64,000 nucleotides of DNA. Source: Takakia lepidozioides (lineage: Eukaryota > Plantae > Bryophyta). Numbering within the stretch: position 1 is the first letter of the stretch; every line of letters starts with the position of its first letter. The notes beneath the pieces are model-generated. The model searched no databases, had not been told where the DNA came from, and was given only the letters and a program-made list of their open reading frames with translations. Shown piece by piece: positions 7,596-58,283 of this stretch. The position numbers and the translations under genes are program-made. Location of the stretch: contig CM060732.1 in the NCBI GenBank assembly GCA_030704615.1, positions 36,890,001 through 36,954,000 on the forward strand, in the 5' to 3' direction.

Positions 7596-8666
7596 TTACC
7601 TTAATGTGTCCATGTTTCCCACAGCCAAAGATGCTGAGTAAGATGCATCTTCAATCAGCCGAATTGTGAAGTAGTTCCCTTCGATATCGATTGGCAGTCG
7701 CACATAGTCCGGCAGCACTGCTTCATAAGGCATCATCAGCACCATTTTAGGACAACCATCTTCATTCATATTTGTTCCGATGGTGGCCGATTTCCATGAT
7801 GGCATTTTCCTGAGGACATCAGTGTTCATGAGAGCATCAAATACCCCTAGACAGCCCAAGTACTCTCCAAAATGGTTTGCAATGTCTGGTAGATTTGCAA
7901 GATACTGATCTGGGATAAAAGGAATAGAAACAACTCTAGGTCCCCACAACTTGTCGTTCTTGTTGCCCAGCTTAGACGACCAAGGGAAGATATTTACGTT
8001 AAAACCTTTCTGATGCGGGTTGAATTGCAGGGCCTTAGCTGCCGCAACCGCCGATTCAAACATCACTGAAAAGAAACCCCGTCCTTTGGCAATGCAGAAG
8101 TGATGGGTAAGCTCACCCGGGCCCCCAAGATAGCGGATCGCCCAGTCCCTCACGTAGGATCTCTTGACCTTTCTGCCCGGAAAGTTTAGTAAGATACCAG
8201 AATTCTCCATACCTGGGATTCTGATGTGCAGATCTTGTATATCCATCTTGATAAGGGGAAAGACATTGCTCATTGCTCGCTGCTCCTCCAGGGGGTCAGT
8301 GAAAAACTCCTCTTCTTCTGGTACTGGAGGGGAGAGGCACTGCTCCAGGATGTGCGGGGGCCTTGCCTCACTGATGTGGACTTTCGGGGGCAGATCCGTC
8401 GAAGTTGGCGGGATTTGCTTAGGCCTGTAAATTTGCCTTGAGCTGGCCGATCTTTCCTGGTGGGCCCAGTAGAAGCCCCGACTTGAGCTTGGCTGGGACC
8501 CATTAGGCGGGTGCCTGCGAGTGACCCGACTGGCGACGCAGCCAGTCTGAGGACTTGGAGCGATGGAACATGGAATTCGGCGCCATGGCACGCAGCACAG
8601 AGAGAGGTGCCGGGGAAGGATCAGGGACTCTAAGAGAGGTAATAACGACTGAACTGCAAACAACAT
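7596..8666 (-). CDS. LINE (L1-like) ORF1 with DUF4283-like domain; decayed continuation to ~6570
   Basis: VRDWA...KGRGFFSVMFES..AA..AL....FNVNIFPWS, then L..IANHFGEYL; GA-rich leader at 8720-8780. Confidence 0.6.
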   Translation of the reverse strand: MLFAVQSLLPLLESLILPRHLSLCCVPWRRIPCSIAPSPQTGCVASRVTRRHPPNGSQPSSSRGFYWAHQERSASSRQIYRPKQIPPTSTDLPPKVHISEARPPHILEQCLSPPVPEEEEFFTDPLEEQRAMSNVFPLIKMDIQDLHIRIPGMENSGILLNFPGRKVKRSYVRDWAIRYLGGPGELTHHFCIAKGRGFFSVMFESAVAAAKALQFNPHQKGFNVNIFPWSSKLGNKNDKLWGPRVVSIPFIPDQYLANLPDIANHFGEYLGCLGVFDALMNTDVLRKMPSWKSATIGTNMNEDGCPKMVLMMPYEAVLPDYVRLPIDIEGNYFTIRLIEDASYSASLAVGNMDTLR

Positions 8667-14433: not shown

Positions 14434-17400
14434 CATAATAAGTTACAATAAAGTTAATCAGGGCAACATAAAAATAAATAAATAAATGTGGATGCGTTGG
14501 AAATGGGCTCTTATAGTTTGTCCTAACTTCGGTTGGTGTGTGTGTGTGTGGGCGCGTGCCCGCATTGCTGAAGCAGGAAATTATGGTGTCAGTTGACCTT
14601 GACTCTAATTTGAATAAGAGATTTCTTATTCTGAAGTTGCATCTATTCCCTCTATTTTGCTTATATGTACATATATATATTATTTATTTGTAATTATTTG
14701 TATGTATGTGCAGACAAGTTTCACTTGACAAAGTACTGCACGGCGGGTACCAAAATGAATGGATAGATATGCACAAGTGGCTCCAATCACGACATCCAGA
14801 GGACTATTTTGTCGACGATAGTAAAAAAAACTCCGTAATCAAAACAAAAAATGTGAAATTGTATTGTGAAGCCAACAAAATAAAGTTGCACCCCCCACCA
14901 AATAAAGAAAGATTTATTCTGTCTAGATTCAAAAATATTTCTAAAAAGATTGACAATCTTAATCCCATTATTCTTAAAAGAGATGGTCCTTATTACCAAT
15001 TTTTTGGATGTTAATTAGATATAACATTTGAAGCAACAATGACCGCAAGATCAGATAATAGCTTATTGTAGATGTTGTCAGTTTTGCAATATAAATCAAT
15101 TATTTATATTAGATTGTTACATTGATATTATCTTTAAATACCCAAAATAATTATTTATTTAATAATAAGTACTATCTACTTAAATACAAACCCAAATTTG
15201 TTCATAATTTACATTTGCAGCTCCTCATTTAGCTCTCTCATCCATTATAAACAACATCGACCGAATTCTATAATCAATAAGGCCCCCGAGTTTGCAGGGC
15301 CTTGTCCATTGGAGGATGGTCCAGGAATTAAAAAAGGGGGATATAAACTACACAAGGATTTGCAGAAATAACCATGGTGTAAGGGGGTAAGAAAAATAGA
15401 TAGGTAGGAAGGTGACATCTATTAAATGGGGGATGGTTCAGGTGCCAAGTTTGGGTTGGTAGAGTACATATGTCAAGTGGTGGTTTCTGGGGGTGATATG
15501 TGTGGGGTAGACCGTAGCCTTCTAGAAAAGTACTCCACCGCTTGAGGAGGTGGGGGCGTCGCCTTGAGAGGGTATATATAAAGGAGAAGCACGCTCTCTT
15601 TCCTTGCCGAGTCTTACTACTTATTTACTAGTAGTAACTACTTTAGTGGGCTTTGCACATGCCGGGCCCCAAGAAAAGACTCAAACAGTTAGCTAAATAA
15701 TGTACGAGAAGACGGATCTAACATTTTTCAATGGTCAACATTGCGTATGGAGGCTCAGTAATAGATGGTCTCCTTGTAATCATGGCTCGTCTCTCATACA
15801 CGGAGTGAGATTATCGCCACTTGTCAAGCAATTACCAGATATAATGCGTCGCCCTCATGCTCCGCATCTCCCGCAGCTCGACGTCAGGGCTCCCCATTAT
15901 ATCTGATAATCTCCAGCTTCCATACAGAGATGATCTAATTCATAATCCCTACAAATTGATAAATATGTGATGTATGAGATTATTTTTTACTTATTAAATT
16001 AAATCTGTCTTGTGGAAATTTATCACAATAGCTGAAGAGGTAGACCTTTAAGCTGAACTTTTAGTCCTCATTCTCATTTCAAAGTTTAGTCTGCACCTTT
16101 GTTGATCAACTTCCGAAATCTCGAGGCTGAGTATGAAGTCGGCCAGGCCAAGATGAGGTTTGATTATTGGGCATCTCATACATAACAGATTGATGGTTGT
16201 GTGAAGGACTTTTTAGAAGAAAGCCCAAATCAGATTGTCATGCTCACTCGGTGCATTTATGGTAATGGCATGTTCATTGCAGTTGACAACGTGTGACTAA
16301 AGCATCAAAAACTCAGTTTCTTGGGTTTTCAGATGTCGCAATGTTCTTCGTCATTATACCGATCCCACATCATGATCGACATCAAAACATCTTTACTTTC
16401 ACATTTGTTCTCATCCTTACCTTCATATTCTTCCGAGACATCTCCTATTTCCTGCTCTCCATCGTCACAATAATTATGAGCACTATAACCCATAAATGCC
16501 AATGTTGGTCCACTGCAAATGGTATCAAAAAATAGATACTACATGTTCCCATAAACCCTACTTTGAAGTTGAAGGCGTGAGTGCTATTGCCAATGATTTA
16601 GATACAAATGTAGCCAATTCTTCTTTGCAAACATCCCCATGAGTACGTCTCTTAAACATATAGTATATACATGTATTTCTTTAACAGTGAGCAAAACAAG
16701 TATTTGGTGATGACGCGGACTATGCTGGATCCAAAAACCCCATGACGATACCCTGCTGTTGAAAACCTAACTCCTCGTAGGGATCCCAATAATAACCTTT
16801 CCATTGTTTCCCGAGTGCAATGACATCGAGAAAATCGACAATTGTGGCTGGTACATAGATGTCTGCAGATCTCATGGGCACCGAAGTCTTCAGTTCGAGT
16901 GACTCCGAGTGCTAGAGAAGACAAATGTTTTCTCTATATCATTTGATAATTAATTTAGGTTTTGGATGAATTTTGCAAATTCATTTCCTCTTGTAACATC
17001 TCTCTTACTTTTAAGGAGAGCAATTACATTTTGTAAGGCTGCAGCCTTGCTATAGGAAAATACATACTAGTCAGTAAGAGCATCCCCACCCTTGAGCCCG
17101 AAATACTCCTTGTAACGTAAAAATTACGTGATCGATTCAGAGCCTGTTGGGTTATGTGGTGAGGCAGCCCCTCCTCGCGCACACCCTTGCCCCTAAATCG
17201 CCCACACTATCCCCGTGGAGCTCGGCTCCCATTGGCAGGAGGGGCCATGCTCGCTGCCAAGCTGCTGACATGCACGCGCTGGTCACGTTGACTTGGATTC
17301 AGGGGCGTATTCGGGGCCCTGAATATGGCGCTTGGGTTCAGTGCACGGAACGATATTCAGTGCCCGCTTTTCATGGGATATGGGGTTCAGTGCAAGGGTG

Positions 17401-19851
17401 TGGACGTTTTCCCGCCACCACACCCTGATATTCCGTTGGCGTGCTAGGTTCAGTGGAGGGTGGGGATGTTCTAAGGGTGATGCAAAACTTAATAGCTCCT
17501 TGTGAGGAGACGTTTTTTTTTCCGTCTTGTAGCAAAGAAGCCACGATTGAGTGTCATTACTTAGAGAGTACTATTCCATCTAAATCAATTGTGCATTTTT
17601 AGACCTTGGGGTGATTCACTTAGGGGCGATTGCGAGTGCCCATAGAACCTGGCACTTATTAGGCCTACTCAAAGGCTATTGCGTCAACACTATTGGCCCT
17701 CTCTTTAACTGGGATGTGCACAAAGAGTCCTTTAGTTTCAGTCCTAGGTATATTGAATCTGTGTTTTGTACTGAAATTCATTGTTGATGAATTCACAACT
17801 AGTAAGGAAATTATGGACAAAGAACCCCTCTCATTTCTTACGACTTTTGTATATGTTAGGGTGCCATCTTGAGGGCACACATCTTAGTAGCCCAACGGCA
17901 TCCCCATCCCCGACCATCTCAAGTGTCTTTATTTTTCCATGTCTCTTGCCCAACACAAATGTGAATGCCAAATGTTAGCTTGAAGAACTTGTCCCAGTTC
18001 AAATTGTTTGCTTTGGTTAGAACTTAGAACTTCAGTTCACAACACTTGAAAGTGCACAACCCTTTTGGATACGAATTGTTTGTCGGTTGCTAATTTTGAA
18101 TGTAATTATGCATTGTAAGGTAAGCTTCTTTGTGTGCAAGCCGTTGGTTGCACGCAAAGGTAGATCTGACCGACATGGTCATGCATAGACGTGTGGCCAT
18201 TTAATTTTTTATTTTTTATTTTATTTTTTTCGTAGAAGGCAGCCGTTTTGCCTAGATATGATTACTTGCTTAAGTACTATATAAATCAAAGCACTCAGGA
18301 GAACGAGGTGGTGGATTTTGGTCTCAGATCTTGTACAATGTACCTATGAAGTGATTGGATGAAAGTGTATGAGAAAGGTTAATCCTTGTGTTAGATTCCA
18401 TCCTGTCTAGCGTGTCTCTGTCCTGCCGTGCTACAACCCTCATACGGGTAATACCGGACCAACAAGGGGAATATATCCCCGGCCCCGGAATCTTGGTGGA
18501 GATGGGGGGCAGTTTGTCTGTTATGAAGATGTATGAACTAATGATGTTCAGGTGCTGGTAAGGTACAGGGAATTGGAAGGTACGGCGGTAGCAAGCATGA
18601 TGTTTGCGGCTTATACTCCTTGTTTCTTCGTTTTCTTTTTTTGTTTGTGCCAACTTGTGTTGATTCGATCTACTGTGTGCAATGGCATCTCCTTCCCACT
18701 CTGAGATGTTGTTTCCTAATATTACTCCTGAACTCAACTTCGAGCTCACATTTATGCATGAATTACGAGTCCGTTTAAGCAAAGATATCTGCAAGTACGC
18801 CCCTATTGATGCCAAGGAAGCATGGACGCGTGATGAGATTGTGGTGGACACTCCCTCGGATTACTGGATTGTCAAATTCAAAGGGAGGTTGCAAAAGTCA
18901 CAACCACCGCTGCTCAAAAGCGTGAACAAAAACGCAAAGTAGACGAAGCACTATATAGGGCTTGGGCTGGGAAATTGTTGCAAGAACTACACGCGGAGGA
19001 GATTGCTCAGAGGATCCCATTTGCAATGCTCAAACAACGTATGAGTGCTAGTGAATGGTTCAACTGGGCTCAATTGGGTGTTCCTAAGTTTACTGTCTCC
19101 CGGGAGCTTGGCCGTGATTTAGAGAGCTTTGCGCATCCCAACAGGCCCAGTCCTTTGCGGCTCTGGGAATTTGTCAAGGATGGTACGGCTATTGTATTTG
19201 CTACTCTTCGTGAGGCCACGGTCACTGAGGCTGCTGCTGATCCCACCTGGGAAGAGGTAGTAGCTGGGGTGCTTGAGCAACGATTCCATCATTGTGCCAC
19301 GGATGTAGTCGTCCTCCCTGGCAAAAGCTTCAAATACAAACGCGTGGGGCTTAGTTAGGTGGAGGAAGCAGCGGAATACCCTCCCCATACCCTAATTGTC
19401 AAAGAACGCATCATTCGCTCCATTGCTAAGGTCTCGTTTTGGCTCAAATCCGATCGGGAAGTCTGGGATTAGTTGGGTGAGGCGGTCTACCTCTTGCCCA
19501 AGCACAAATACATCAGTTGCCACCGTGTGGCGAACTTGGAAGAATTTCTTCAAGCTCCAGCAGATAGGAGGTAAGCTGTGTTGGTCCTGCCTATGCCTGT
19601 CCACACTAGGGCCATGCTGGAAAAAGAAGCAGAAGAGATGGTAGGCTTAAGTGAGCTTGAAGCTGGAAGAGAGAGAGAGTTAGATGCTGACAAGAATGAA
19701 AACTCTCAAGCTAAAGAATCTATTGATCAGGGAGGGGTAGAAGATGATAAGGTCGCTCAGGAGCCAGCTCTTGATGTGGAAGAGCTTTTTGAGGCCATGG
19801 GTATCATATCCAACTGTCCGCCTTCAATGAAAATGCAATCAAGGTGCACAT

Positions 19852-20653
19852 GTGGTGTCGGATAACAAGTCAATGGGTTTTGTTGAAAGAATGCACAAGC
19901 AACCCTTTCCTGATTTTAATTTGGGCAAGGATTTCAAATCTTTTCTGGAGTTTTTTGACATCAGCACAGAAATCAATTCAGTCCCACAGAAATTTATTAT
20001 AAAGATCTTTTGCATGTGTCTGAAAGGGGAAGCTAGAAAGATTTTTGAGTCCAACATCAAAGGCAAAACTGATCTGACTTGGGCTGAGGCCAGACAATTG
20101 GCAAATAGGTTGTTTCGGGAAGTCAAGCCCATTGCCTATACTGTCCCTGAGCTAATATTTTCCCCTGGTGACAGTATCTGGAAGTATTACTCTGATCTTC
20201 GTACAGCAGTTTGTAAGGCAGTGGAAGAGCCGGCTGAACGTTCAGCCATACTGAAGCATTGTTTCATCAAGGGTTTACCCCTAGCTGAAAGGGTATTCTT
20301 GCAAAAACAATATATATCACCATGAAGACGAAATGGTAGGCTTACTGAAAGAGCGACTTAGGTTGAAGGCTGCCAAGGTTGGCATGAGCTTCTCCCTTCT
20401 TAAGGCCACACATTTTCTTGCTGCTAGTCAGGAAACTAATCTAGTGGATGTTCATGGTGAGGTGACTGCAACAGCAGACCAGGTATTACTCACGTTGGTT
20501 CATGAGTTGCATCAATTGCATAGTGATATGCAAGACCAGCTGCAGGCTTTGAAAAGTGAAGCCACTTGGAGGGCCTCGGGTTCCGATGCCCCTAGCCAAA
20601 GCCCGAAGGTTCTAAACGAGGGGTTTATAGGGGAAAAACCCAAACAGGCTTGA
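19852..20653 (+). pseudogene. Retrotransposon gag capsid
   Basis: FPDF...FLEFF....F...LKGEARK.F.....LTW.E.....F and FIKGLP. Confidence 0.7.
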
Positions 20654-20899
20654 GGTATGTTGACAAGGCCTCACTACCTGCAAGCATCATCTGTAAATCC
20701 ACTGAACACTACACTCGACGCTGCCCATACATGCCTGATTTGCCAGTTCTTATTGAGCAACTTAAGAAAGAGAAAAATGGAGTTGGAAACGAAAACGGTC
20801 GTCTGTGAGGGTGCTAGACGATCACCGTAGCAGCCCCAAATCACTGGTAAGTGCGGTTTTCTCACAAGATTTTAAGTTATTGCATTGTGAGGCTCTCCG

Positions 20900-21137
20900 T
20901 ACCATGCGCAAGGTTCGTGTTCATCCTCTCATGACACAATGTTATGTGGGTCACTTGTCCTTTTCTTGTATCATAGATACTGGATACACAATGTCTGCAG
21001 TACCACTAAATGTCGTGCTTGTCTTAGGCCTCAAGTTACAATCTGCTATTGGCCTTACAGTGACCATGGCTGACGGTACAGCCTATGAACCATTACAATA
21101 TTATGAAGCAGTGAATCAAGATTTAGTTTTCAAGTGA
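20900..21137 (+). pseudogene. Retroviral-type aspartic protease
   Basis: CIIDTG...SAV.....LGL......VTMADG. Confidence 0.75.
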
Positions 21138-21759
21138 ATGTGCATGACTCCAAATTCTTTAAATATCGACATCAAAGTCGAATGACATACATTAGACAAT
21201 GCAAATGATACATATTAGTAAAATAATTTTCATGACTCCAAATTCATTAACGTCGACATCAAAGTCAACTGATATACAAATTTAGCCAATGCAAAGGATA
21301 TATACTAATTAGCACAAGTATCCATGAGACATCATTACCCAGTACATGTTGTCAATTAGTCTGCTATCCCCAATACAAATGCACCATATATAGTCCACAA
21401 ACACCCTAGCCCTGAAACTAGAACATCTACACATAAGGTTGACATTGAGAAGACTGGGTGTGCGTCGCACGAAAATATGTTTTTGCAAATGCCTCCGCGT
21501 AGATAGGTAGCTTGTAAAAATGAAGACTCGAACTTAGACCAAAAAATTTGTTTTGTAAAAAAAAAAAATGTCGGTTTCGAATTCAAATTGACTCCTGCAA
21601 AAGAGTAACCACGGATATAAATTGATGAATACTAACACATGAATACAAGGCCCGAAGGCGAACTAAAAGGTATTTAAAATCAAAGCGGTACACCGAAATT
21701 AAAAAAAAATCTTACTCACATGAGAAAACCGAATCAACATTAATAAAATGTGGAAAAAT

Positions 21760-23470
21760 GTATGGAACCTATGGAACTTCTAGACATTTTTACTCGAAAT
21801 AATTTCTCCAGACCAATGTATAAGTGTACTCCAAAGCTATGTACATTTATTTTTTCAATGACTCACTTCGGGATATGAGGTTGTGAGGTATTATACGGTT
21901 TAGGATAAGAAAAAAGTGTGAAGAGGGGGAAAAAAGAAACAACAGTGCATCGAACCTATAAGAACTTTCAATCAAATATCTCAACCTTGAATACATTGTA
22001 CCCCAAAGTAAGAATGTGTTTTTTTAACGAGTTTCCAACATGGATATAACGTTTTAGGAGCATAAAGTTTTAGAAAAATTATAAGTATGAATCACACAAA
22101 ATATGCAGGAAAGTTTACGACCTATAAAAACGTTCAATCACGTAATATTTTAACCATAATTGTATTATACCCAAAGCTGAAAAAATGATTTGAATGTACT
22201 TCAAATATTTGAATGAGGTTTAGGGTATAGGGGTTTGGAGAAGTAAAAGTACTATCAAGTACAAATAAAATTGGAAGAGTGTGTAGAACATATAAGAATT
22301 TCTAAGTAAATATCCCGAGGACTCTATCATATATATAAGCTAGAATAAAATGAGTCAATGAGCTTCAAATGTATAAACTACGTTTTAGGATATACTAGGG
22401 TTTAGAACAAGCAAAAGTGTGAATGATACAAATAATGGGATATTGTTTAGGACTAATACAAAATTTCAATTCAATATTCCAACAACTCTTAGTAGTATGC
22501 AACCCCAAAGTTAGAAAAAAAATTTTTGAGTGAGCTTCAAACATTACAAAGATATGTTTGGGGTACTGGGCTTAGGCTATTAAGCTAAAGTATACGTAAG
22601 AACAAATATGAAAGAATGGAACTTAGGATCTTCAATTAAAAATCCAGACCACTTTATCTTATTATAAATCAATGGGAGAAAAAAAATAATGAGCTTCAAA
22701 CAATAAAAAAAGATGACATACTAGGATGTAGGGTAAGCAAATTTGAGAACGTAAGAACAAATATGAAAGAATGGAACTTAGGATCTACAAAAATATCAAT
22801 TAAAAATCCAGACCACTTTATCTTATTATAAATCAATGGGAGAAAAAAAATAATGAGCTTCAAACAATAAAAAAAGATGACATACTAGGATGTAGGGTAA
22901 GCAAATTTGGTACTATTCAATGACAAACAAATTTACAAGAGTAATTAAGACATATAAAATCTCTCAATTAAATATCATAAAATTCTATAAATTTCCCCAA
23001 AGCTTAGTACTAGCCAAAAAAAATAAAATCTATTCAATATAAACAAATGGTTGAAAAGTGCTTATAAGGAAGTTCCATACAAAATTGCTACCAAGTAGTA
23101 CTAAACAATTGTTTTAATGAACTAATTCAATCTTATACATGTTGGGATTAAAATTTGTTCCGACCACGTCCCCACTCTATTGTACCCCAAAGCTGAAAAA
23201 TTTAGAAATAGGAGGAAAAAAAAACAAAAAACAAACAAAAACGGGACTTGGGCTTCAAACATGGATATGAGGTGGACAAAAATATCAATGAGAAACTAAT
23301 ATAGAAGAGAGAGTTTGTGTACGAGGTCCTATAAAAACTTTCAATCAAATATCCCAACCTTGAATGCATTGTATTCCAAAGTATGAATTTGCTTTCTTAT
23401 GAAGGTTCAAACATGGATATAAGGTTTTAGGGGTGGATCTATGGTTTGGAGCCAAGTTAAGACAAGATAA
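21760..23470. repeat. Degenerate AT-rich tandem repeat of ~165-190 bp with one recent ~155-bp near-exact duplication
   Basis: Recurring GAACCTATAA..TTCAATC, CCCAAAG and GAGCTTCAAACA at ~168-bp spacing; 22595-22745 nearly equals 22750-22908. Confidence 0.7.
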
Positions 23471-23847
23471 AACAATAGAAAACAAGGGAAACAAGACAAC
23501 ACAATGAATTAATAAGTCTGCAATTTTACCTGTTACTGGATGTCATGTCGAAGTGCTTCGGTGTGTCTTCGAGGCTTCCAAATAAATGCTTCAAATGCCC
23601 CTTATCCACTGATTGACCCTTCCACAAATACATCTATTAGTTTAAAAGGTATAAAAAGAGGTCTAATAAGGACAATGGAAAACAAGGTACCCAATATGGT
23701 GGTAATGACAAGAACTTCCCCTATGCACTAGCCTGCCACTCCACTGTTCCAAGCTCTGTCCATCTCTCTCGCTACCTCTCGACTCGCAGCAACTTCAACG
23801 TCCCTGCTCGCAACAGAGGTGGTGGCTGAAGAATTAGGGCAAATCCC

Positions 23848-24273
23848 CATCCGTTGGATCTTGCCAGATCCAACGACATCACCTAGATGAGAGAAAAAAA
23901 AAAAAAACGCTATCCACCGTGGCCGTTGGATCCACGATCCAACGGCTTTCACAAAGCCTTGAAAAAAACCAAAAAAAAAAAAAACACCAGCGCGATGCCA
24001 CGTGGCCACATGATGATGCGCCGAGCATGCGTACTGGCGTGGGTCGGCGCCGTCAGCGGGCGCCGCCAGAAAAAAATTAAAAATTAAAATACAAAAAGTT
24101 GCTGCATCTGGCCACGTGCAGTTGCGCCGAGCGCGCGTCGGCGCCGTTAGCTCGGCGCCGCCACCAAAGAAAAAGAGAAAGAAAAAGAAAAAGAAAAAAG
24201 AAAAAACCTGCCGCGCTTGGACACGGGCGACGCGCCGAGCGTGGGTCCCTGGCGCCGTCAAAGGCCGTCGCCA

Positions 24274-24319
<46 letters not shown>

Positions 24320-25210
24320 CAACGTCCGTTGGCTTGTCGTGCTAGGCCATGTGGCGATGCGCCGAGCGTGCAGCCTGGTGTGGGTCCACGAGGCCCGGCA
24401 AAGTCAGCGGTATCAGCCACCAAAAAATAAATTAAAACAAAACAACAAAACCCAACGCCCGTTGGATCTTCCAGATCCAACGGCAACGCTCAAGTGAGAT
24501 CTCTACACCGTTGGATCTTTGAAATCCGACGGCTTCGAAAAACCCAGCAGAAATGTAAAATATATTAAAATATAAAATAAAACATTATTTTAAATTCCAA
24601 TAATACCTGAATGGACGGATGCTGGATCTTTGCGATCCAACGGTCTCCATCCCAGGAGAAAAAATCCAATATAAAATAAAACAAAATATAAAAAATAATA
24701 GACATTAGATTTCGATAATAAAAAATAAAAAAACAACTTGGCGCATTTCAACATTTGAATTGCTCCTTATTACTTTGTGTTCAACATATATATTATGAAC
24801 GATGCATATTTTTTCAAAATCTCATGTGTAGTCTGTTGGTATGATTGACAAGCCTGGTACAAAAGGTTACAGGTTCAATTTTCTACCCTTTGTTTGGTTT
24901 GCCTTGTAGGACTAGTTTTATAATTACTCTCATGCAGGTAATTTCATGTTGTTTTGCACTTTCAAGTATAATAAGAAATATTAAGTAGATAATATCTAAC
25001 TAGAAAATAAAAATAAAAAATAAAAAATAGGGTAAAAATTAGCAATAGGTCCTCCCATCCGTTGGATCTCTGTGATCCAACGGTTTCCCAGCCTCCGGAA
25101 AAAAAAATCCAAAAAATCAGAAATTAGTTGCTGAGGGTTCCGTCGAATCTCGGCGCACACGCCGAGGTCTCAACTATTGAGGTTCGACGCACATGTCGAG
25201 ATCTTAATTA
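23848..25210. repeat. Cluster of palindromic CCGTTGGATCT-N-GATCCAACGG and CGCGCCGAG motifs with poly-A tracts
   Basis: Copies at ~23850, 23922, 24458, 24508, 24617 and 25059. Confidence 0.75.
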
Positions 25211-25350
25211 TTGAGCCCGCCACAAAAAATAACCCCAGCCGCTACTGAGGTGTGCATTCAGGTAAAATAAATGGTCGATAATAGATGATAACTAAGTGGA
25301 AAATAAACAAATAGTACATATGGAATTAAAAAGAAATAATTGTTGCAGAA

Positions 25351-26278
25351 CTAAGTTCACTGGTGTAACGATTTTTGTTGTTCATGATATTGTTGCAGGA
25401 CCTAGGAATGTAGGTGTTAGTTGCTCATGGAAAGTTTCAAATCGAACTAAAATCATACGAACGGTGTTTTCTAAGTTCACTGGTGTAACGATTTTTGTTG
25501 TTCATGATATTGTTGCAGGACCTAGGAATGTAGGTGTTAGTTGCTCATGGAAAGTTTCAAATCGAACTAAAATCATACGAACGGTGTTTTCTAAGTTCAC
25601 TGGTGTAACGATTTTTGTTGTTCATGATATTGTTGCAGGACCTAGGAATGTAGGTGTTAGTTGCTCATGGAAAGTTTCAAATCGAACTAAAATCATACGA
25701 ACGGTGTTTTCTAAGTTCACTGGTGTAACGATTTTTGTTGTTCATGATATTGTTGCAGGACCTAGGAATGTAGATGTTAGTTGCTCATGTAAAGTTTCAA
25801 ATCGAACTAAAATCATACGGACGGTGTTTTCTAAGTTCACTGGTGTAACGATTTTTGTTGTTCATGATATTGTTGCAGGACCTAGGAATGTAGGTGTTAG
25901 TTGCTCATGTAAAGTTTCAAATCGAACTAAAATCATACGGACGGTGTTTTCTAAGTTCACTGGTGTAACGATTTTTGTTGTTCATGATATTGTTGCAGGA
26001 CCTAGGAATGTAGGTGTTAGTTGCTCATGTAAAGTTTCAAATCGAACTAAAATCATACGGACGGTGTTTTCTAAGTTCACTAGTGTAACGATTTTTGTTG
26101 TTCATGCTATTGTTGCAGGACCTAGGAATGTAGGTATTAGTTGCTCATGTAAAGTTTCAAATCGAAATAAAATCATATGGATCGTGTTTTGTAAGTTCAC
26201 GAGTGTAATGACTTTTATGGTATATGGTACTATAGGACATATGAATGTAGGTGTTACTTGCTCGTGCAAAGTTTCACA
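25351..26278. repeat. 120-bp tandem array, 7 near-identical units plus 1 diverged unit
   Basis: Units begin (C/G)TAAGTTCAC at 25351, 25471, 25591, 25711, 25831, 25951, 26071 and 26191. Confidence 0.97.
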
Positions 26279-26423
26279 CTTGGATGAATTGGTTGCATAG
26301 ATAGTGCATATGAATGATACATATACACATATAATTTGACACATCACCACCCACAATATATGAGAGATATATCACTATGTGAATATAATGGTGTATATCC
26401 GATATGCTCTCACAATGATAATG

Positions 26424-28922
26424 TCAATGTAGTGAACTAATCCACAATAAAATGTGTAAATGAGGGTCGTGGTCTCGCCGGTGCCCGACCTCCACGGCCT
26501 CCACGGCCCCGAAAGGGTGTGCTCTCATTCTTACCAATAATTGATGCAAATACCGTAGCTTCCTCAATTGTGATATTATGCCCTGTAAATTCCTTCCGCA
26601 AAACCGCAAGGATTGCAGGGCCCTGCCAACGCTGCTGCTTGTAAACCTTATAGGAAAATTAAAAATAAATACACGGTTCAAATACACAACATGAGAATAT
26701 TGAATTGATCATAGATAGTAGTGTGTAACTAAAATGAATACAAATAAGTATTACAACAATCATTTGTAAATACAATTAGTACATGTTCACAATTACAAAC
26801 ATTGAATATCATTTAAACGTTGGGTAGACAAATTACCTTGCTCGAGTTATCACGATCCATGGCCAATCCCTAAATACCTTCACATGTGTGGCCTTTTCAC
26901 GGTCCCATGCCTCTATACAACAGCTAATGGGTTCATCATGTGATATCGCTTCAAGCCATGGGTTCAATTCCTGACATATCGCATCAACTTACATATTAGT
27001 AACATGAAAATGACCAATGAGACTTCATTGATTTATACAGAACTTATCATTGATATTTTGAACAAAATTATATATATATGTAAATTATATGATGAATGTA
27101 TCGACACGTACCATAATGATGTCAACTTGAGTAGCATACCGAGTTGACACGGACAAAATGGTATCAAAAGGCTCAACCAAATGTAGGTGAGTGATGTAGC
27201 CGGAAGTGACATTGGTAACTGTACACCAACGGCAAAACGATGTGCCAGTGGCGGAGACTCCACCTCTGCAAATGAGAGCGTATATACAATGTACATCATG
27301 ATACTCCACAAGAGTGAAGCGTACATGACGTCCATCAAACATGCTCAACCCATGTGTCATAAGTTGCTCCAACTGGTCGAAGAGATGACCTCCATCCAGA
27401 AACGCCTCCATGTCGGCAATATGAGCGATAACCTCAGGGCCAGCATCCTTACCCTCCCACTTGGCAATGGATATCCATGATAACAACCAGCGGTCACAAC
27501 GCAACTCCTATGCAACCTCACATACCTGAAAGAAAAATAATCACATTAATAATTAACATGAATGAAGTGACGTGTATCTTTCAATGGTTGTAGATATTAT
27601 GTTACTGCAACCAAATGTTTGGAATTGAATAAAATCTGTCCGTCTTTGCCATAGTAAAGTCGCGAGTCGTTACTAAGTTTGACAACTATTTCATCATCAA
27701 CTCGGCAACCAGAGCGCTTCTCATAATACAATAACATATATGTGACCCATGCCTCAATGCTATCAACTTGTACGCCATATGTAACATCATCCGTGCGGCC
27801 CCAACCAAGCCCTGATGCTGAAGCCTCGGTGTAGAACTCCTAAACATAACAACAAGATTAATTTTAATATGAATTTATATTGAAGTGGATATAAAAAATA
27901 CATAAACTTACAAACGTAATATAAATATGTATGCACAAATTAATAAATTAAAACTAACCTTCATCTGCTGTACGACATTTGTGGAATTAACGGTCTTGAA
28001 AACGCCATACACGTCAAACGACTTAAGAAGTCTCAAAGTGTTGTGAGTCATCCCAATATCAACCATCAATGCCGCAATCCGTGTAGGGTCAAAACATTGT
28101 CGTTTATTTGTCAATACACACTCTACCTCACGGTCACGAATAATAGGCCATACATTCCAAGTTTGAACAATGTCGACGAGTGCCAAATGACGGTGTTATG
28201 TACTCTGGCCAATGTATTGAATGACCCTGCAGAATCATGACACTTAGCCATCGGTATACCAGTGATAACAGATGCCAGATAGGTCATGCCCCACTAGTAC
28301 TGCCACCTACGACGGTCATATGCACCAGAACCCATCTCCAAATCACATATGGACAATCTCTGACGAGAGCTCGGCACCGGAGTAACAAACTGTGTGGCGT
28401 ATGAATGCGGGCCAATAGGGGCATGTATGGGTGCACGCACGTCAACATGACCTGACTGTATAGTATGAGTAATATTCACATCGACATCAACAGTCATAGA
28501 GACTGTACTATGAGCTAGAGTCATCTCGGATATATCACTGTGACCATGAATGACTCGCTCAATACTCTCCAATGCCGCACCAAACTCATCCTCAGTAAGA
28601 TGGGGGTGGACATCTGGGTCAGGAATGAGATCCGTGTCCTCACGATGAGGAATCTCATCATTATCATCATCATCAATAATAATGCGACTTGGAATGACGG
28701 CTCCCTTACTTATAAGATCGAAGGACCAGCGATATTTTAATGCAACTCTAATGCGACTGTCTGACGTATCGGTCGACTATCAAATCCACTGAAATATAAT
28801 TGTCCTATCCATGGGGTGGCTAGGGTCGGATCAATGTCAGGGGCTCGACGACGTGGAGGCCTTGGTGGAGGTCTACGATCTGGCTCAAAAGCGAGGGCCA
28901 AACCGGAAGAGTCGTCTTCCAT
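26424..28922 (-). pseudogene. Spliced RAG1/Transib-like DDE (RNase H-fold) transposase-like gene with a LysM-like insert
   Basis: Inferred exons 28922-27959, 27839-27606, 27525-27112, 26970-26837 and 26646-~26535 with GT-AG borders; motifs VVKLSNDSR, FTLVEYHD, GGVSATGTSFCRWC and HLVEPFDTILSVSTRYATQVDIIM|ELNPW; several stops and frameshifts. Confidence 0.6.
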
Positions 28923-29100: not shown

Positions 29101-29247
29101 GTAAAATAATGGTGTTTCTTGACCCCGAAGGGCTACTGCCTTCCAGCATGAAGGTGGACACCTTTGTGACATCAATTAGTGGATTCAACTCACAACCATT
29201 TCCGAGGTGGTAAGTATCAATTACAACTGGGCTACAACTTGGTTGTC
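29101..29247 (-). ncRNA. tRNA-like plus multi-hairpin RNA candidate, copy 1
   Basis: A-box-like TAGCCCAGTTG, anticodon-like loop CTCGGAA, T-arm-like GTGAGTTGAATCCAC, then CCTTC-loop-GAAGG and CCC-TTCG-GGG hairpins. Confidence 0.45.
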
Positions 29248-30208
29248 AGTGTGCCATAATAATTTTATCCACCACCTACTGAAAAAACATTGCTATAATA
29301 GTCCCATGTAATCAGTGACTCCGTCGGATAGAGCCCGCTCATAGTATAAGGAGGTAGTACCCGCAAAGGGAAGAGGTTCTTATTTACGCTAGCTTCGGTT
29401 AGCGTTATATATATAATTTCGTTTGTTCTAATGCAACTTGCATAAAGAATATTCTTGCATGTTCGAACCAGTGTGGTAATGGTATATTACTTTGTACCTA
29501 GGTATGAGTAAAGGGTATTGTAGAACATACCGGTTGGGTATGTCTTGGGGCTTATACCCCGACTATACCTTGGACCCTCGGGTTTTGAATATTGGACCTA
29601 CTCCCTACCTACCATACCAATCTAAGTATGGACTATTTTCATACTCGGCTTGAGACATATAGTGGGGATTGATGAACCCAAGCTAGCATCATAGGTATGT
29701 GTAACGATACAATTTTTTTGTGCTTATCTTCATTCACATTTGTGCATTAATGTAGAAAATAACACTATATCTTTGCAAATTTTATTAAAAAATAAAATAA
29801 AGAAATTATTTTCTACATATCTTATCTTTACATAGACATAATATATACTTATGATATGTACATACCATACACTTGCACATATAGACCTAGTATCTCCATT
29901 TAAAATTTGACTTACTCATGCCTAGGATCAGGGTATGTCCACATATGAATACTAATACCAGCCATGTACCCTACCCACGCGGTGAATATGTAACATTTTA
30001 CATATTCAAGCAGCTATTGAACAGGTGCACCGACCATGCTCGAACAATGCCCATCCTATTGATTAATATATAATTTAAGTCATTCACATATCATCGGAGG
30101 TATATGGACTCAATACAATCAGTAATAAAGTAATGAAAGGGTCGATCCATAGTATCGCCTAAACCCTAAGTGTATTGTTTGATTCATAATATTTAATATT
30201 TAATATTT

Positions 30209-30373
30209 GACGCCTTCCGAAGGAACTGTAAATTATGGCGTCTCTTCATCCCGAAGGGTTATTGCCTTCCGCTAAGAAGGTGGACACCTTTGTGACACCA
30301 AGGGTGGATTGAACCCACAACCACTTCCGTAGGTGGTATGTGCCCATTATCACCAAGCGACAACTTGGTTGTC
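30209..30373 (-). ncRNA. tRNA-like plus multi-hairpin RNA candidate, copy 2
   Basis: GACAACCAAG/CTTGGTGTC acceptor-like stem, ACCAC-CTACGGAA-GTGGT, GGTTCAATCC B-box, two TTCG hairpins. Confidence 0.5.
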
Positions 30374-33300
30374 TTGATTCATAATGTTTTAATAATATGT
30401 CACTTGCTGATTGAAAATAATATCCCATCTTGATTTAATAGTACGCGATGCATTGAAAAACCAACATTTTTAAGTCAAAAGAAGCAATATACCTAAAGTA
30501 TCCAAAACTAATATCGTATAACAAACATTTACACTTATAATATTTATTCATTCAAAGATGGTATTATATATATATATATATATATACAAGCATATTCAAT
30601 TGTATTTTACACAATTGTACAATCCCAAAGTTATATTAATTATGAATATCAAAATCATAATATCGTAGATGGTAGAAATATCATATCCGACAAGTACAAT
30701 GATGACATGTTCGTACTGCGATTATCGCTGGTGGGCCGATTCGTATTTGCAACGTATGTCCTTCTTGCAACAAACACTCCATCCTTAGACTTAAGACCAC
30801 ACAAAAAAATAAAAATAAAAATAAAAATAAACACCAAAATACAAAACAAAAGAATAAAATGAAAAAACATTGCAATACAACAAGTAGGCATAGTGGAGGC
30901 TTACCTTGAGAGCTCGTGGAAGAAGTGCACGTTCAAATGTGGGCTTGCAATTCTTATAGTGTGCAATTAGCCCCTAGCAATTAATGCTATGAAAGATCTA
31001 TTAAAATTTATCATCCATTGGATAAAAATTACCATCCGGACGGAATGGAACGGCCATTGGGTTTGGATGGTTGTGCAACTGTTGGACTTTGGATACTAAG
31101 GGACATGCACCGTTGGACGGAATGAAACGGCCGTTGGATTTTGGATGGTAATTGGTTGTGCATTGCATATTAGGTGGATGATATATCATTAATATGCATT
31201 GACTTGTGTGTGTGCACGGTGCATCGTTATGATAAGCTAATAAGACAAACAACGTAGTGGTTAAATGTCATTATAACGCAGTCTATTCATTTGAATTGTT
31301 TGAATGCAGTGCATTAAATACCTTGGCATGCACAAAGGGATGACCGGCGAGAGCCAATCATTTTTGGATTTTTGACCTGCTGTTGAAGGTTCAACATGTT
31401 ACGTGTAAGCATCCCACAATATAAGATGTGTTTTAAAGTATGTTTCATTGCTAGATACGTTCATAGTACCAAGGTTTGAGGGAGACTTTGGCACTTCCAC
31501 ATACTCTGCACTAATTTTAAACAACTATGCATTTCGGAACCTAGGCAGAATTCAGAACGGGATCAGCCGGCAAAGGAAATTGAAACATAAGTCATGACTA
31601 TGGCTATCCAGCCTATAAGATGGTGTTGAGTGCTAATCTAAGCAGGCCTAAAGGCCGAGGTCAACAGTGGTTGAGAACTAATCTAAGCAAGTTTAAGCAG
31701 GCCGAGGTCAACAGTCGTAAACGAGCACCCTATGTATAGTGAAGCCTGGAGGCCACTTCTAGTTTTCATTTCATGCTAACAGCATCATCAGAGTTTATCA
31801 CCTTAATTTAACCCAAGGATGTGCATTGCTTCTTGTTTGGGACCAGTCCCTTCCACCTTATATGTATTGGCAACCCCCTCCATGTGCGAAGATGTGTTTT
31901 GAGCATGGACGATATTCTCATGTCCTCACTGCCAGTATCAGCTCATAGATTGGGTGTGAAAGCTTAGAAGAAGTGCGATGCAGGCAGTGACAAGGGTATG
32001 CATACAGGATCAGCCAGCAAGGTACCGAACGTCAAGCACTCTAACACAAGGGAAATATCCACCAAGTAGTATCCACAGACCCTTCATTGTACACCAGGTT
32101 GTACATACGAAAAGAAACCCCTTTAATCACGGTGAAGCTGATCACTTACCAGCAAACCCTACGTTCCACTTAGCCACCAACTGACAGCACTGCATATGTT
32201 ACGCATAATGGTACTCCGCCGTCGTCTACTAAATGCAAGGAGGAGCTTATACAAAAACATCGCACGGAAAGACAAGTAGAAAGGCAGGGAAGTATGTCAG
32301 CAACTCTTGCAAAATATCCCTGACAGGCCACATGGACCTGGGCATTTCTAAAATAACACAACACGCTAGAATTAAATGCAAAGACACCAGCTCCGGCTAA
32401 TCTCTTGGCGTTCCACTGTTTCCAGCTCTGAACGGCCTGCTCTACTCATAATCAGTTGTCATCTTCACTGCAAATTCAAATCAAAGACATCTACCTGTTG
32501 AGTAAGCCGTATCGATAGAGAGCCCAACGTATAATGGTCTGCCATCTCGACTTTAAGAGTAACATTTGAAAGCCTGTCAGAGACAACAAGGCGGGGACAA
32601 ACAAGCCAAGGCCCAAGAGATGATCTGCACAAACATTGTTCCTATTTAGTTCATAACCCTTGAAGGCACTAAGGGGATATGCCGGCATGTTCCAGTGTGA
32701 ATTCAGATAGAAGTGGGTATCTTCAGGATATGCAACTAATTACAATGACTGTCTGTGGAGGAGACGTACCTAAGGGAATCAAGGGATGAGCTCCACACAA
32801 TTTAGGGAGGGCCTTGGTAGCATACGTGGCATGTACGTACCCTTGTACTATGGAGGTTTTAGTTGACGTGGCGTTTTAGCTCCACGTAGGATCATATCCC
32901 TACGGCAAAACTTGGAAAATCCTGCTCGTAGCGGTAGCAGAAAACTCAAACTAGTATTAGGGCCTGGCCAGGAGCCTTCCTGGAATGAAGAGGAGCTTCT
33001 CGACACCCAGGCAAGGAGATTGAGAGCAAGGAGATTTCAGCGCATCGACTAGCTTCATCTTTTCGGTGAGATTCCTGCAGGCCGCATGGAACGTGAATGA
33101 ACTTGGTGAGTGTTTCACAGCTTTCTTTGAGATTATGGATGAGGCACACTCTCTTAAGACATTGACTTCAATATGTTAACACATGTAACGCACTGCAGGA
33201 AAACTCTAAGTACAACGCGATCTCAGAGTTCGAAAAAAAAGAGACTATGGACAAGCTTGCCGAAGTCTATCTAGAAGGAGACGACCTCAAGGAACTAATC

Positions 33301-33945
33301 CCGATGACACAGGGGGTGTGTGGTGTGAGCGCTTAGGAAGGTAGTCTGTGTTAGTGTGCCTCTTTGGTAAAATCCCGTGTGAACGCTGGTAGTGTAACAA
33401 CTGGTAATCCTATAAGTGAGAAGATTGCTAACATTAAGTGATACGAGGTGATAGGGTGGTGTGAATGGAGCTTTAGAAGGATGGTATTCTCTAGGTGGAG
33501 GTTGAAATTCCGGAGTATGTAATGGAGTGGAGTGATGGCCTGTTCGAGGCTTTCTTTCGGCCTCGTATAGATTGAACCATTCACGCGACGACGACAATGA
33601 TCTTCGATCTCCATGGTCAACATCCCCTATCTAATCCCCTATCGAGTATAGGTTTCCAGTCTCTCTCGCACTCAGACATGCCTGTCATTTCTCGGTTGTC
33701 GTAAAGACGATAGCATTCTTGGCACATTTGCGACTGTTATGCCAAGTTGTTGGGGGTTTCGCAACATGGCATTTCGATCTCAATGACAGATGGATCGAAA
33801 TCGAACGGTTGGATTTCTTAGATGGCAGCATATAAGCGTGGAGAGCTGTCTTCGTGATGAGAGCTAAAGATTGTACTCATAAGACGTTGTTTGCCGTAGC
33901 CTTGTGGCCTGATGAGAGCTAAAGAGTGGAGAGCAAGCGAAGAAG

Positions 33946-36916
33946 ATGGCGTTTCCACAAAAAGTTGCAGAGTGTAGGCTATTGTACGAGCATCGAGGAA
34001 GACCCAAAAAATATAATGACTACGAAAGTGCAGCAGAAACTGTTCAATGGACGGTAAGATTTCTCTCTATCTCCTCAAGTATAGTTCGCTAAATTTCTTT
34101 CATGTCTGTTTTTGATATTTTTCCGTAAGTATGAGTCTTATAAATTCTGCCCTTTGCAATGGAATTTCAGGAGTTTTTGGAAGCAGCCAAAATTACTCTT
34201 GAGATGTCAAATATTAAGGAAGCAATGGTGCTGGTCCTTTGTGAGGAAGACATTTGGGCGATGTGGGAACAAGTGTTTGATCGTTGGGAATCTGGTAAAC
34301 TAATTGATGTGTATGGGAAAGAGTGCAAGACAGAACAGGTGCAGCTTCCAAAAACCTCTATCAGTAAGCTGCAAGGGCTTGACTCCCGCCAACTGAAGAA
34401 GGTTACCCAAAAAGTTCTGGATTGCAGTTTTTGTCTCAGACATCCTTACAAGGGTAAGGACAAGTCGATAATGAGCATGCATGACTATATAGAATATATG
34501 AAACTCAGAAGGTTCATTATCGACGACATTATGGTGGTGTTTGGATATCCCACACGGACAAAGGCCAACCAAAATCCATACACAAGAGAGTCGTGGTTAG
34601 AGATAAAGCAGAAATACAAGTTTGAGAAATCCACGTTTGAGTCGATGCAATTGACTCTCGGAAGGTCCTACCTCAACAACAAAGGGAAACGAAACCAAGG
34701 GAGCCAGACGTTTTTCTGACATTCATACGAGCTTGGAGGAAGAGTATTGATGAGAAGTTAGATAAGAGAGTGAGTATGGCGGAGAACTTCGAGACTGATT
34801 ACAGGTCGGTTGGAGTATGCAAGAAAGCAACAGATGTCAGCAAACAGCTTTCCTATATCGGCCAGACCAAAAAGTACGACAATATTGGTATGGTGTTTGT
34901 AAACACAATCCCTGACGATATTTGATGGTGTCATTTGGTCGACTGCAGATTATGCAAACATCCTGAATTCGTTCAGGTTTCCAAAATTCAAACGTAATGC
35001 TTTCGTTTTTCTGTCCAACCAATCCTCGTCAATGAATCTGGCATACTATGTCCGAGGAGGGGAGGGCCTGAAGAGGTATCTCATTGTTCAAGGTGTTTAC
35101 TTTCCGGGAGGTACAGAGAGCCATTTCAAGAGCTGCTCAGCTGGATTATCTCGTCCTATCCTTTGTGTGGACTATGTCTTCCCTGTCAATATGACAGAAT
35201 TTGAACATCCCCATGAGCATATCGATCGGTGCCTTTTGGAGAAACCTATCAACCCCCTTCTTCATCGGACAAATCAAGACATCAGCGATGAAGAGACAGA
35301 TCTAAAGGTTTATAATAATGAGCTAAGAAGTAAGACATACGAGTATATTGTCTCATTGTTCTGCAGATCTGGGATGACAGCGTTTAACATTTTCGGAGGA
35401 CCTCTGCTCACCCTCCAGCTTCACGTACATTCCTAACCTTAATTATGGTTTTGCTTCATACATCTCGTATGTCTTTGTCTCTTCTTATTTCCTCCCGTTC
35501 TAATCAGCTCATCGGAAAAAGAATAAAAATGAAAAATCAGCGACGTCATGAACGTCGACTGGCCATTGGACGTTCATGCATCATTATCTTTTCTTTATTC
35601 ATCACAAACTAATCTGAGCCACTCTCCTTTATCCTCACCAGGCTCGAAATGTTCAAGTGGTCGACATGAATGAGGAGGACAAGAGTAGGTTATGCATGCT
35701 GAAGGTCCACTCGGCCTATCGCTTGCTGCAATCAGAAAAGGAAACTCTTAAGTCTGCTGATGACGAGATCGACAATGAGGACCTATTTGGCGACAATATT
35801 AGGGGGAATCATGAGGGGGAAGAGAATAGTAAAGAGGATGAAACTAGTGGGGACGCACTGGATAGTGATAGCGAATCCCGAGATGAAGATATGCATCTAA
35901 TTCAAAGGAGACGAGCTTCGAGCAAAGAGTATTATGTTGACGATGAAGTGGACGATAGAGAAGGCGAAGCCGAAGATCTGCACTTCGAGAGGAGACGAAA
36001 ACGATACCATGCTTTGAACACTATCATAGATGAGTCGAGGAGAAAAGAGGATAATACTTGCAACGAAGTGGATAGTACTGGTAGCAAAGCTGACGCTGAA
36101 GATATGTACACTGAAAGGAGTATCCATGCTTCGAAGACTCTGACATCAAATGAGAGGAGCAAAGAGGATATTCCTACTGTCTACGAGGTGGACTGTGATA
36201 CTAGCGAAGCTGAAGCTGAATATCTGCACATTGAAACAAGTATCCGTGCTTCGAGCGCTCTGATAAATGAGAGGAGCAAAGAGGATCTTAACACTGGCGA
36301 CGAGGTGGACTATGATCATAGCGAAGCTGAAGCTGAAGATATGCACATCAAGAGGAGACGGATCGAAGGATACCATGCAGCTTCGGCCAGTACTGATCTA
36401 ACGAATGAAATCGAAGTTTCTTGGACTCTCATTTTAAAAATAGAGACAGGCTTGCTGCCTGCTTGTGATCTCTTTGTGATTCATAAAGGAAACGTTTTGA
36501 GGATGCCCTTACGGCAGACGTACGTGGTTATATGGTTATTAGTTACAAGTTACAAGTACTTGTGTGGACACAAGTTCGAACTTAATACGAGGCAACCCTT
36601 GACTGATCAGAATTTGATACATTGTGCAGTAACTCTGCAGAAAATGGCTCAAATTTTTAACGATACATGGGGATACCCTTCAAAATTCTTGTTTCAATCC
36701 GCCTGGATCGATCCGAGTGGTCTTATTGAAGTGCTGGGGAGGGAGATATCAAAGCTGCAGCGACTCGGCACCACAATCCCTGAATCCATCACATGCAACA
36801 ACGCCCCAATTGAAATTGACCTCAAGTTAATTAGAAGTGTGTATGCCGCATATCAGTCAATGTACACAGCATCCTGCATGTGTATCCAAAGGGAAGAAGA
36901 TAAACTCATCACTTGA
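33946..36916 (+). pseudogene. Spliced gene copy 1: helical N-domain, degenerate N4C/N6A MTase-like domain, acidic repeats
   Basis: ATG at 33946; introns 34054-34170 and 35425-35641; frameshift near 34705; colinear with 40208-42290. Confidence 0.7.
35860..36410 (+). repeat. Coding acidic tandem repeats (NERSKED...D..SEAEAED.HI)
   Basis: About 5 degenerate units of ~100-115 bp. Confidence 0.8.
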
Positions 36917-37879: not shown

Positions 37880-38488
37880 GGATATTGGATAGATGGCTAC
37901 GAAGGACATATTCCAACTTGGATAGAATACATAACAGGTCCCGGGATTAAATGGCCACAGCACATTGAAGTCCTATTGTTTTAATCTCGCCTCGTCAATT
38001 TGAAAAAAGGTTTTGAAATAGTTGTGAAAGGAAAGGGATGAAGCACGGTAGGCTCGGCCCTTTTTAATCCTAGTTTCGATAGTGGACATCAATAGGACAT
38101 CAACCGATTCAGCCAGCCGCTGGAATTGACGACAATCGAGATCCTTGGTGCACGGGTCAGAAGTGTAGTTATAAGTAGGCACAGCAACGACCTCCTTTCT
38201 TGTCAACTCCTTCCTTGTCTACCGCCTCTTGCAAACAGCAGCTTGTTGGAAGCCTGACCTAAAATTAGTGCACATAGAAGATGACCATGATTGCCCACGA
38301 ATCGAAATGAGGATTAAAAAGGGCCGAGCCTACCTTGCTTCATCCTTTCCTTTTCATGACTATTTCAAAACGTTTTTCAAATTGACGAGGCGAGATTAAA
38401 GCAATAGGACTTTGTGCTGTGGCCATTTAATCCCGGGACCTATTATCCAAGTTGGAACATGTCGTTCGTAGCCATCTCTCCAATATCC
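37880..38488. repeat. Long inverted repeat with ~200-bp arms and ~200-bp spacer
   Basis: 37880-38090 is the reverse complement of 38288-38488, e.g. GGTCCCGGGATTAAATGGCCACAGCAC / GTGCTGTGGCCATTTAATCCCGGGACC. Confidence 0.92.
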
Positions 38489-39960: not shown

Positions 39961-40207
39961 GTGGTTGTAATATGCATGGTTATTTCGTTTCTCCAAAATA
40001 ATTCTAATGAAAGAGGAACATGAAAGGTAGAGAAAACCCACAGGAGAAAGGCCAATTTTGCAAGACTATCATTGGTTGCTCATGAGCCCTACAAGGATGC
40101 TAGCCTCAAGGGTGGAGGTTGAAGCTTAGAGATATTATACCGTTCTATTGATGGCTTTCAAGAAGGCTTTCTTTCGGCCACATACAGATTGAAGCAGAGT
40201 GGACAAG

Positions 40208-42290: not shown

Positions 42291-42297
42291 TGATCTA

Positions 42298-58252: not shown

Positions 58253-58283
58253 GTACCCAGGGCCTTTGCGTATCTCGTTGCTG

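Follow-up and report, generated by a model that had tools for sequence, protein, structure and literature searches.

Our analysis indicates that the locus described here, which lies on the minus strand of a 64,000-nucleotide stretch of DNA (hereafter the window), is very likely a dead copy, with an internal deletion, of a cut-and-paste transposon of plants, probably of mosses, that exists in multiple copies and whose transposase belongs to the branch that includes Transib and RAG1, the enzyme that shuffles antibody genes. The host is a plant whose DNA has spliceosomal introns and LTR elements.

The original prediction of a RAG1/Transib-like gene, spliced by hand, holds in so far as the locus is a real, intron-split relic, but the gene is not protein-coding, being dead and internally deleted. 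The peptides cited in support are present on the minus strand where they had been placed, as are both candidate aspartate codons (GAC in KLSNDSR and GAT in EYHDV; Table 1), and the CxxC is confirmed as a CRWC motif (Cys codons 27234–27232 and 27225–27223, minus strand). The absence of the gene from the track of open reading frames had been put down to introns, and spliceosomal introns do hide it; canonical splice sites flank exons 2, 3 and 4 and the last exon. The lower end of the predicted span, 26424–28922, shifts slightly, as the frame that matches the family stops at 26437.

The gene was searched exon by exon. Among 1.84 billion proteins, exon 3 from 27507 to 27112 gave 26 matches at E ≤ 1e-3, the best at 1.9e-21; about 24 of the 26 are members of one family, the other two are long repetitive proteins that are not relatives, and none is named or carries a transposase Pfam domain. 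The exon and intron positions of the window gene are repeated in independent loci, and on this evidence, together with the E-value of exon 3, a chance match to the motifs was rejected. The junction of intron 1 is confirmed because the homologous locus L015, which lacks this intron, runs continuously there. We take the conserved RRR-WW block in the 5' part of exon 1 to be a possible equivalent of the nonamer-binding domain. The last exon shares with the family its Arg/Gly-rich tail ending in FT....D; when it is compared with the terminal region of the family, 2 of 2000 shuffles score equally and the pairwise E-value to L015 is 0.007, and across the whole window it reaches only E 0.8–0.9, which is not significant.

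Table 1. Features of the decayed transposase gene. Positions count from the first base of the window; L numbers denote homologous loci.
Feature	Position	Strand	Content and basis
Possible N-terminal coding start, Pro/Arg-rich	28740..28922	-	ORF without a family match, uncertain; not conserved; frame change near 28750 needed to join the next segment
Exon 1, 5' part	28249..28761	-	Matches L008 and L014; acidic low-complexity stretch, then conserved RRR-WW-GM..Y.AS..G.P block; stop TAG 28296–28294
Exon 1, 3' part, DDBD-like helices, shifted frame	27959..28248	-	36–46% identity to L014 and L015; stop TAA 28198–28196
Intron 1 (GT..AG)	27840..27958	-	Position shared with L008 and L014; L015 lacks it
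Exon 2, pre-RNase H (GLGW), then the first RNase H strand, bearing Asp 1 (27668–27666)	27636..27839	-	38–44% identity to homologues; Asp 1 within family motif KL[AG]ID[SA]R
Intron 2	27526..27635	-	Family donor is AT here (27635–27634); GT at 27605 is cryptic and in frame
Exon 3, remainder of RNase H, Asp 2 (27297–27295), ZnC2 CxxC (27234–27223)	27112..27525	-	N-terminal half of LysM-like module (27183–27112); stop TAG 27510–27508
Intron 3, interrupts LysM-like module	26971..27111	-	Position conserved in the family
Exon 4, C-terminal half of LysM-like module (ELNP), DWP motif	26837..26970	-	One-base loss near 26861; family exon profile E=0.007 window-wide; DNA comparison
Chimeric intron with deletion breakpoint (about 26796)	26647..26836	-	
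Last exon	26437..26646	-	Weak match to family terminal coding region; Arg/Gly-rich tail, FT....D-stop

The window copy is dead and cannot make the enzyme of the family. In addition to the three stops of Table 1, it carries frameshifts near 28250–28235, near 26861 (the one-base loss) and possibly near 28750, and a mutated splice donor, reading AT rather than GT at the family position for intron 2. The donor that had been chosen by hand, after KHLVA, is a cryptic site 30 nt into the intron and is not the donor of the family; the homologues L003/L004, L005, L008/L009/L011 and L014 splice 30 nt earlier. Furthermore, the stretch left out after VCEV in the hand-spliced peptide conceals the in-frame TAG of exon 3.

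Profiles of four C-terminal exons of the family found no match in the whole 64 kb (best E 0.45–4), whereas the exon 4 profile found its site in the window (Table 1). A paralogous contig tracks the window from 27387 to 26796 and then diverges. The best reading of these observations is that an internal deletion, spanning intron 4 to a late intron, removed the exons that encode the ZnH2 histidines and the third acidic residue, and that the copy, having lost its central-to-3' exons between two introns, then decayed; it would at most have been moved in trans by intact copies. This explains why no third acidic residue had been visible: the residue is indeed absent from the window, but the family has it, and its exon was deleted here. 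The original prediction had included neither the loss of the catalytic C-terminal exons nor the LysM-like insertion, which was noted separately. A simple 3' truncation was rejected, since the last exon weakly matches the end of the family and an internal deletion therefore fits better. Apart from the one-base loss, exon 4 and the last exon agree in phase, so that the reading frame may originally have survived the deletion. Such agreement would be consistent with a deleted copy that still makes a short DNA-binding or LysM-bearing regulatory protein; however, given the three stops, at least two frameshifts and the dead donor, such a product is hardly credible, and no contig covered the gene in one small RNA-like run from another sample, a weak indication as to expression.

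Mobile-type copies of the family (L003, L005, L008, L014, L015 and L021) lie in unrelated flanks and are mostly decayed. They have the intron positions of the window and keep the motifs KL[AG]ID[SA]R, ECHDLA and CPWC; both aspartates and the CxxC are conserved among these homologues, the latter reading CRWC in the window. A near-complete mobile-type copy with all catalytic motifs occupies L015:1299–6390 (also L016, L022 and L023; 45 kb contig). One stop is seen in its exon 1 and a break in its terminal exon, intron 1 is lacking, and its further exons carry YCTRH, TPYFHIQVAH and KNEVVERKH; it offers the best prospect of defining the element's ends. The near-complete homologues L015, L003 and L021 retain the His motifs and the Glu, with H(4)H and NEVVE in L015 and L021, and with NEVLE and an altered second His in L003; the register of H(3-4)H and of the last Glu in the family was set by motif and not by structure. 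The family features run from DDBD-like and PreR regions through the RNase H domain with Asp 1 and Asp 2 to the CxxC and the LysM-like insert, followed further C-terminally by a CxxH motif, TPYxHxxxxH, which we take to resemble the ZnH2 motif of RAG1 (nearest named Atlas cluster RAG1_ZnH2, at only 0.76), and G.L.NE..E.KH, which gives the third acid. To judge by its sequences, the family combines D, D, C(2)C, H(4)H and E, by which the CMCT clade is defined (PMC12730594).

The homologues come from other samples. Over the gene body, contig depths in the runs of the source organism sum to 196–404 against 33–40 per single contig, which suggests roughly 6–11 related copies in the same organism at ≥80% identity, a depth-based figure that is not a true copy number. 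At Asp 2 the paralogues have ECHDL in place of the EYHDV of the window, and they make up more than 90% of the depth at the two differing positions. The probable moss host is based in part on homologue run accessions that we assume to be from Physcomitrium. A metagenome scan with P0001 returned one locus.

An intact, intron-containing gene of the family lies between DNAJC11 and a large low-complexity ORF on three contigs from different samples (L001:9635–14470, L012:10001–14480 and L013:3046–6400). Its second Asp has become His in all nine sequences, and Ala or Ser stands where the mobile copies start NE..E, the motif not being continued and the Glu being lost; the LysM-like insert and the zinc motifs are kept, and the gene is intronless across the core. 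The DNAJC11-linked sequences form a supported clade (99/97), and the gene looks like a tamed derivative of the family in the service of the host. The core and the LysM-like insert are common to the window copy and this gene, the window row sits on the branch towards it (86/86, not starred) and no termini were found, as might also be seen if the window locus were a decayed duplicate of the tamed gene that had never been mobile. Such an origin is extremely unlikely and was rejected: the window copy keeps Asp 2, which is His in the tamed gene; its introns 1 and 2 are those of mobile-type copies and are missing from the tamed gene; its row is placed outside the tamed clade; it is 44–46% identical to mobile-type copies versus 33–39% to the tamed gene; and it has no DNAJC11 neighbour, while several dispersed paralogues exist.

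The fold was tested on a natural homologue, P0006:190–462 (the intronless core of the tamed gene; 30 rows, pLDDT 61, core strands 80–93), which is 38% identical to the window over exon 3; exon 3 of the window folded alone gave a poor model and no fold match. The core of P0006 matches the RNase H fold of RAG1 and Transib. Against 48,161 PDB representatives, six chains reached Z ≥ 5, all of them RAG1, HzTransib or BbRAG1L (Z 5.4–6.9, rmsd 2.7–3.1 Å, about 110 residues; next fold 3.8), and in a second structure search the top 28 rows were all RAG/Transib (Z 6.1–7.2, rmsd 2.6–3.0 Å, ∼110 residues), Z below 8 being middling by the search tool's own scale. The top four Foldseek matches were likewise Transib/RAG1 (E 0.016–0.027). 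Residues of the model from 48 onwards align with RAG1 from 472–473. Model residue 207 aligns with HzTransib 222 and with mouse RAG1 706, where the alignment ends, and the family Asp 2 site (model residue 208) therefore lies at most one residue from HzTransib D224 (residue number from 10.64898/2026.08.26.747230). In RAG1 the site is likewise at most one residue from D708. When single exons and exon profiles were searched by sequence against Pfam and the PDB, RAG1, Transib and CACTA were not matched; matches to zf-UDP, DUF, LRR, SWIM and ubiquitin entries were rejected as short-motif or repeat artefacts.

The parallel that had been drawn with RAG1 holds at clade level as regards the RNase H fold, the register in which both aspartates lie and the kinship with RAG1/Transib. 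We regard the clade as established and place the family in the RAG1/Transib branch of CMCT, where the matches do not separate Transib proper from a sister lineage; the C-terminal motifs owe their assignment to RAG1/Transib to motif likeness and to the way the clade is defined, and not to a structure. It is quite possible that the family is instead a separate CMCT lineage, nearer to Chapaev/DUF1280-type or EnSpm/Plavaka elements than to Transib. Its Asp 1 and E.KH motifs presumably resemble those of Chapaev, whereas its H(4)H spacing, HA.IR motif and LP..IG.L.NE..E stretch presumably resemble those of RAG1/Transib. RAG1, HzTransib and BbRAG1L are the only CMCT members among the solved-structure matches, no other CMCT protein appearing in the PDB lists, and may top the fold searches only as the solved members of the clade. 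The language-model features of the window exon tie RAG1_RNase_H/RAG1_ZnC2, Transposase_21 and Plavaka clusters (0.94–0.95), and the nearest predicted models in the Atlas are Transposase_21, DUF1258 and DUF1280 (TM 0.42–0.49). In addition, all members of the CMCT clade, which comprises EnSpm, Mirage, Chapaev, Transib, RAG1, Plavaka, ESTA and Lanisha, have C(2)C and H(3-4)H placed after the second Asp and before the Glu (PMC12730594). Against a separate lineage, neither the window exons nor any of the 30 aligned members matched Pfam Transposase_21 or other plant EnSpm families at E ≤ 1, and the fold match continues upstream through PreR and DDBD (RAG1 472–515 onward). A separate lineage would change the label but not the mechanism, and we retain the RAG1/Transib branch as our placement.

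Directly after the CxxC, the family carries an H.v...DTI.S....Y motif, then an intron and then ELNP. On Pfam LysM, P0018 reaches 20.0 bits with its half-motif (E=6.6e-4; gathering score 20.9 bits), and the window half alone reaches the PDB LysM structure 4uz2 at E=0.011, with no Pfam match. With a 17-row half-profile, LysM proteins rank first in the PDB; six LysM proteins are matched, and the matches include CERK1, an autolysin, Ecp6 and LytE. The best E of this profile is a sum over two repeats, and summing also gives polyubiquitin a score. From these similarities the insert is probably a LysM. It sits inside the zinc-binding insertion domain; the RAG2-binding helices of RAG1 belong to this domain (PMC9435367). 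Our favoured guess is that the module may add a surface for DNA contact or partner docking; glycan sensing is a less likely one. More broadly, and with considerable doubt, one may envisage an intron-rich RAG1/Transib-type lineage of bryophytes with a functional LysM in its zinc region, tamed once into a conserved but catalytically disabled host gene, in which the LysM would act as a ligand or partner sensor controlling the transposase or the tamed protein.

By analogy with HzTransib and RAG, and building on what the locus and family themselves display (anatomy, conservation, the fold of the N-terminal half of the core and multicopy decay), we propose that in intact members a transposase dimer would bind both element ends and a two-metal D-D-E site would nick each end. 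A hairpin would then form on the flanking DNA, and the element ends would be joined to a new target by strand transfer. The zinc site, formed by the CxxC and two His, would organise the insertion domain.

Searches for CAC..GTG and CA..TG terminal inverted repeats with target duplications stayed at control level in both the window and L015/L016, which are old copies on short contigs; neither Transib-type CAC-heptamer inverted repeats with a 5-bp duplication nor CMCT-type CA..TG termini with a 2–5 bp duplication were found there. A CACTATAAG at 30961 has no partner end. Transib termini are labile (10.64898/2026.08.26.747230). Neither the ORFs of the window nor the 3' flanks of L015 and L021 showed a RAG2-like kelch gene, and no shared ORF or Pfam match pointed to a facing BAH/ubiquitin-like partner gene in the 3' flank of the window or at L015, L021, L003, L008 and L017; at the window locus such a partner may have been lost or may lie beyond the contigs.

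Upstream of the gene, two repeat copies that are about 80% alike (29104–29415 and 30201–30373, minus strand) fold into stems and carry a B-box-like GGTTCAATCC. Their summed depth of 16,000–24,000 corresponds to several hundred copies, they also occur in the RNA-like run, and they are probably a SINE-like interspersed family; Rfam and ARAGORN gave no Rfam or tRNA match, and their folding is not better than that of shuffles (z -1.2). Downstream of the gene, at 25351–26276, there is a tandem array (7.7 x 120 bp, 96% identical) whose plus strand carries a frame free of stops (ORF 25296–26300) and which looks far younger than the adjoining decayed gene. Since these parts adjoin, and the two repeats are alike and fold into stems, we considered whether the gene, the repeats and the array form one multi-part, possibly RNA-guided system. 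This is very unlikely and was rejected, because several hundred repeat copies stand against about 6–11 gene copies, the folding is ordinary, and blastn found neither repeats nor array in any homologous locus, although these loci are from distant relatives.

The rest of the window holds further repeats and elements. Clusters of GATCCAACGG in both orientations, with long poly(A) runs, at 23730–25100 and 31020–31150 resemble the subterminal repeats of another DNA element, and no ends were identified for them; similarly, palindromic units of ∼50 bp (GCGACCACC...GGTGGTCGC), arrayed in two opposite orientations at 51596–52241, resemble DNA-transposon subterminal repeats. A long inverted repeat of about 600 bp at 37880–38488 is MITE-like. 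Two Ty1/copia elements and one Ty3/gypsy element were read from ORFs at 42297–46954, 48277–51280 and 54845–59915, one of the Ty1/copia elements having 146-bp repeats 4.5 kb apart, and a 356-aa ORF at 7596–8666 (minus strand) is, by eye, like LINE ORF1 and has no Pfam match. Two duplications were also seen: a gene in copies ∼6.26 kb apart (33936–36916 and 40198–42290; segments 81–97% identical, internal 99–117 bp repeats, ORFs without a Pfam match), and an element with a 10-bp CTGTG-rich minisatellite in two copies 60.8 kb apart (219–1086 and 61036–61905).

We found no published RAG/Transib-like family of mosses or other bryophytes and no LysM-bearing transposase in a literature coverage that was incomplete and did not include Repbase. 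Scattered Transib matches from flowering plants have already been published: Tao et al. (2022) list 39 Transib-like proteins in plants, the species named being flowering plants (PMC9435367). Their set resembles ours in consisting of Transib-like sequences in plant assemblies, but neither a LysM insert nor a tamed derivative is mentioned, a distinction made by description rather than by sequence; in the parts of the supplements that were searched, no moss terms occur, and we found no paper on the moss lineage. The other CMCT lineages (Chapaev, Mirage, EnSpm/CACTA, Plavaka, ESTA and Lanisha) share C(2)C and H(3-4)H with the family and are its neighbours in Atlas features and shape, but the family has no Pfam Transposase_21 or Plavaka sequence match, differs in its H(4)H spacing and has no CACTA termini that we could find.

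With RAG1 and BbRAG1L (ProtoRAG; PDB 4wwx, 6oem and 6b40), the family shares the DDBD-PreR-RNase H-ZnC2 order and the fold (Z 5.4–6.9). It differs from them in its LysM-like insert, and no RING/ZDD region, kelch RAG2-like neighbour, RSS-like ends or Cx2Cx3GHx4C tail were found for it; this C-terminal tail, a RAG-like (ProtoRAG) feature (PMC7204232), is absent from the terminal exons of the window gene and of L015, L021 and L003. From HzTransib (PDB 6pqn, 6pqr and 6pqy) it differs in its 13% identity, its many spliceosomal introns, its LysM-like insert after the CxxC and its plant host; the termini and the 5-bp duplication of HzTransib were not found for the family in the window or L015/L016, and the window copy is dead. 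The likeness to HzTransib covers the PreR-RNase H fold (Z 6.5–7.2, rmsd 2.7–3.0 Å), the order D, D, CxxC, His motifs, E, and the lack of a visible RAG2 partner.

Relatives of RAG1 and Transib are known mainly from animals, with scattered matches elsewhere. The window copy, a fossil, is of value in attesting the family and in showing how copies with internal deletions come about, and the copies to study are those of the near-intact L015 type and the tamed gene. A long-resident plant lineage with a conserved intron pattern of its own, a LysM-like insert in the zinc-binding domain and an independently tamed gene would broaden the evolutionary setting in which the V(D)J recombinase is viewed, and the tamed gene would provide a second, experimentally accessible taming of the fold, knock-outs being routine in mosses, if the host assignment holds.
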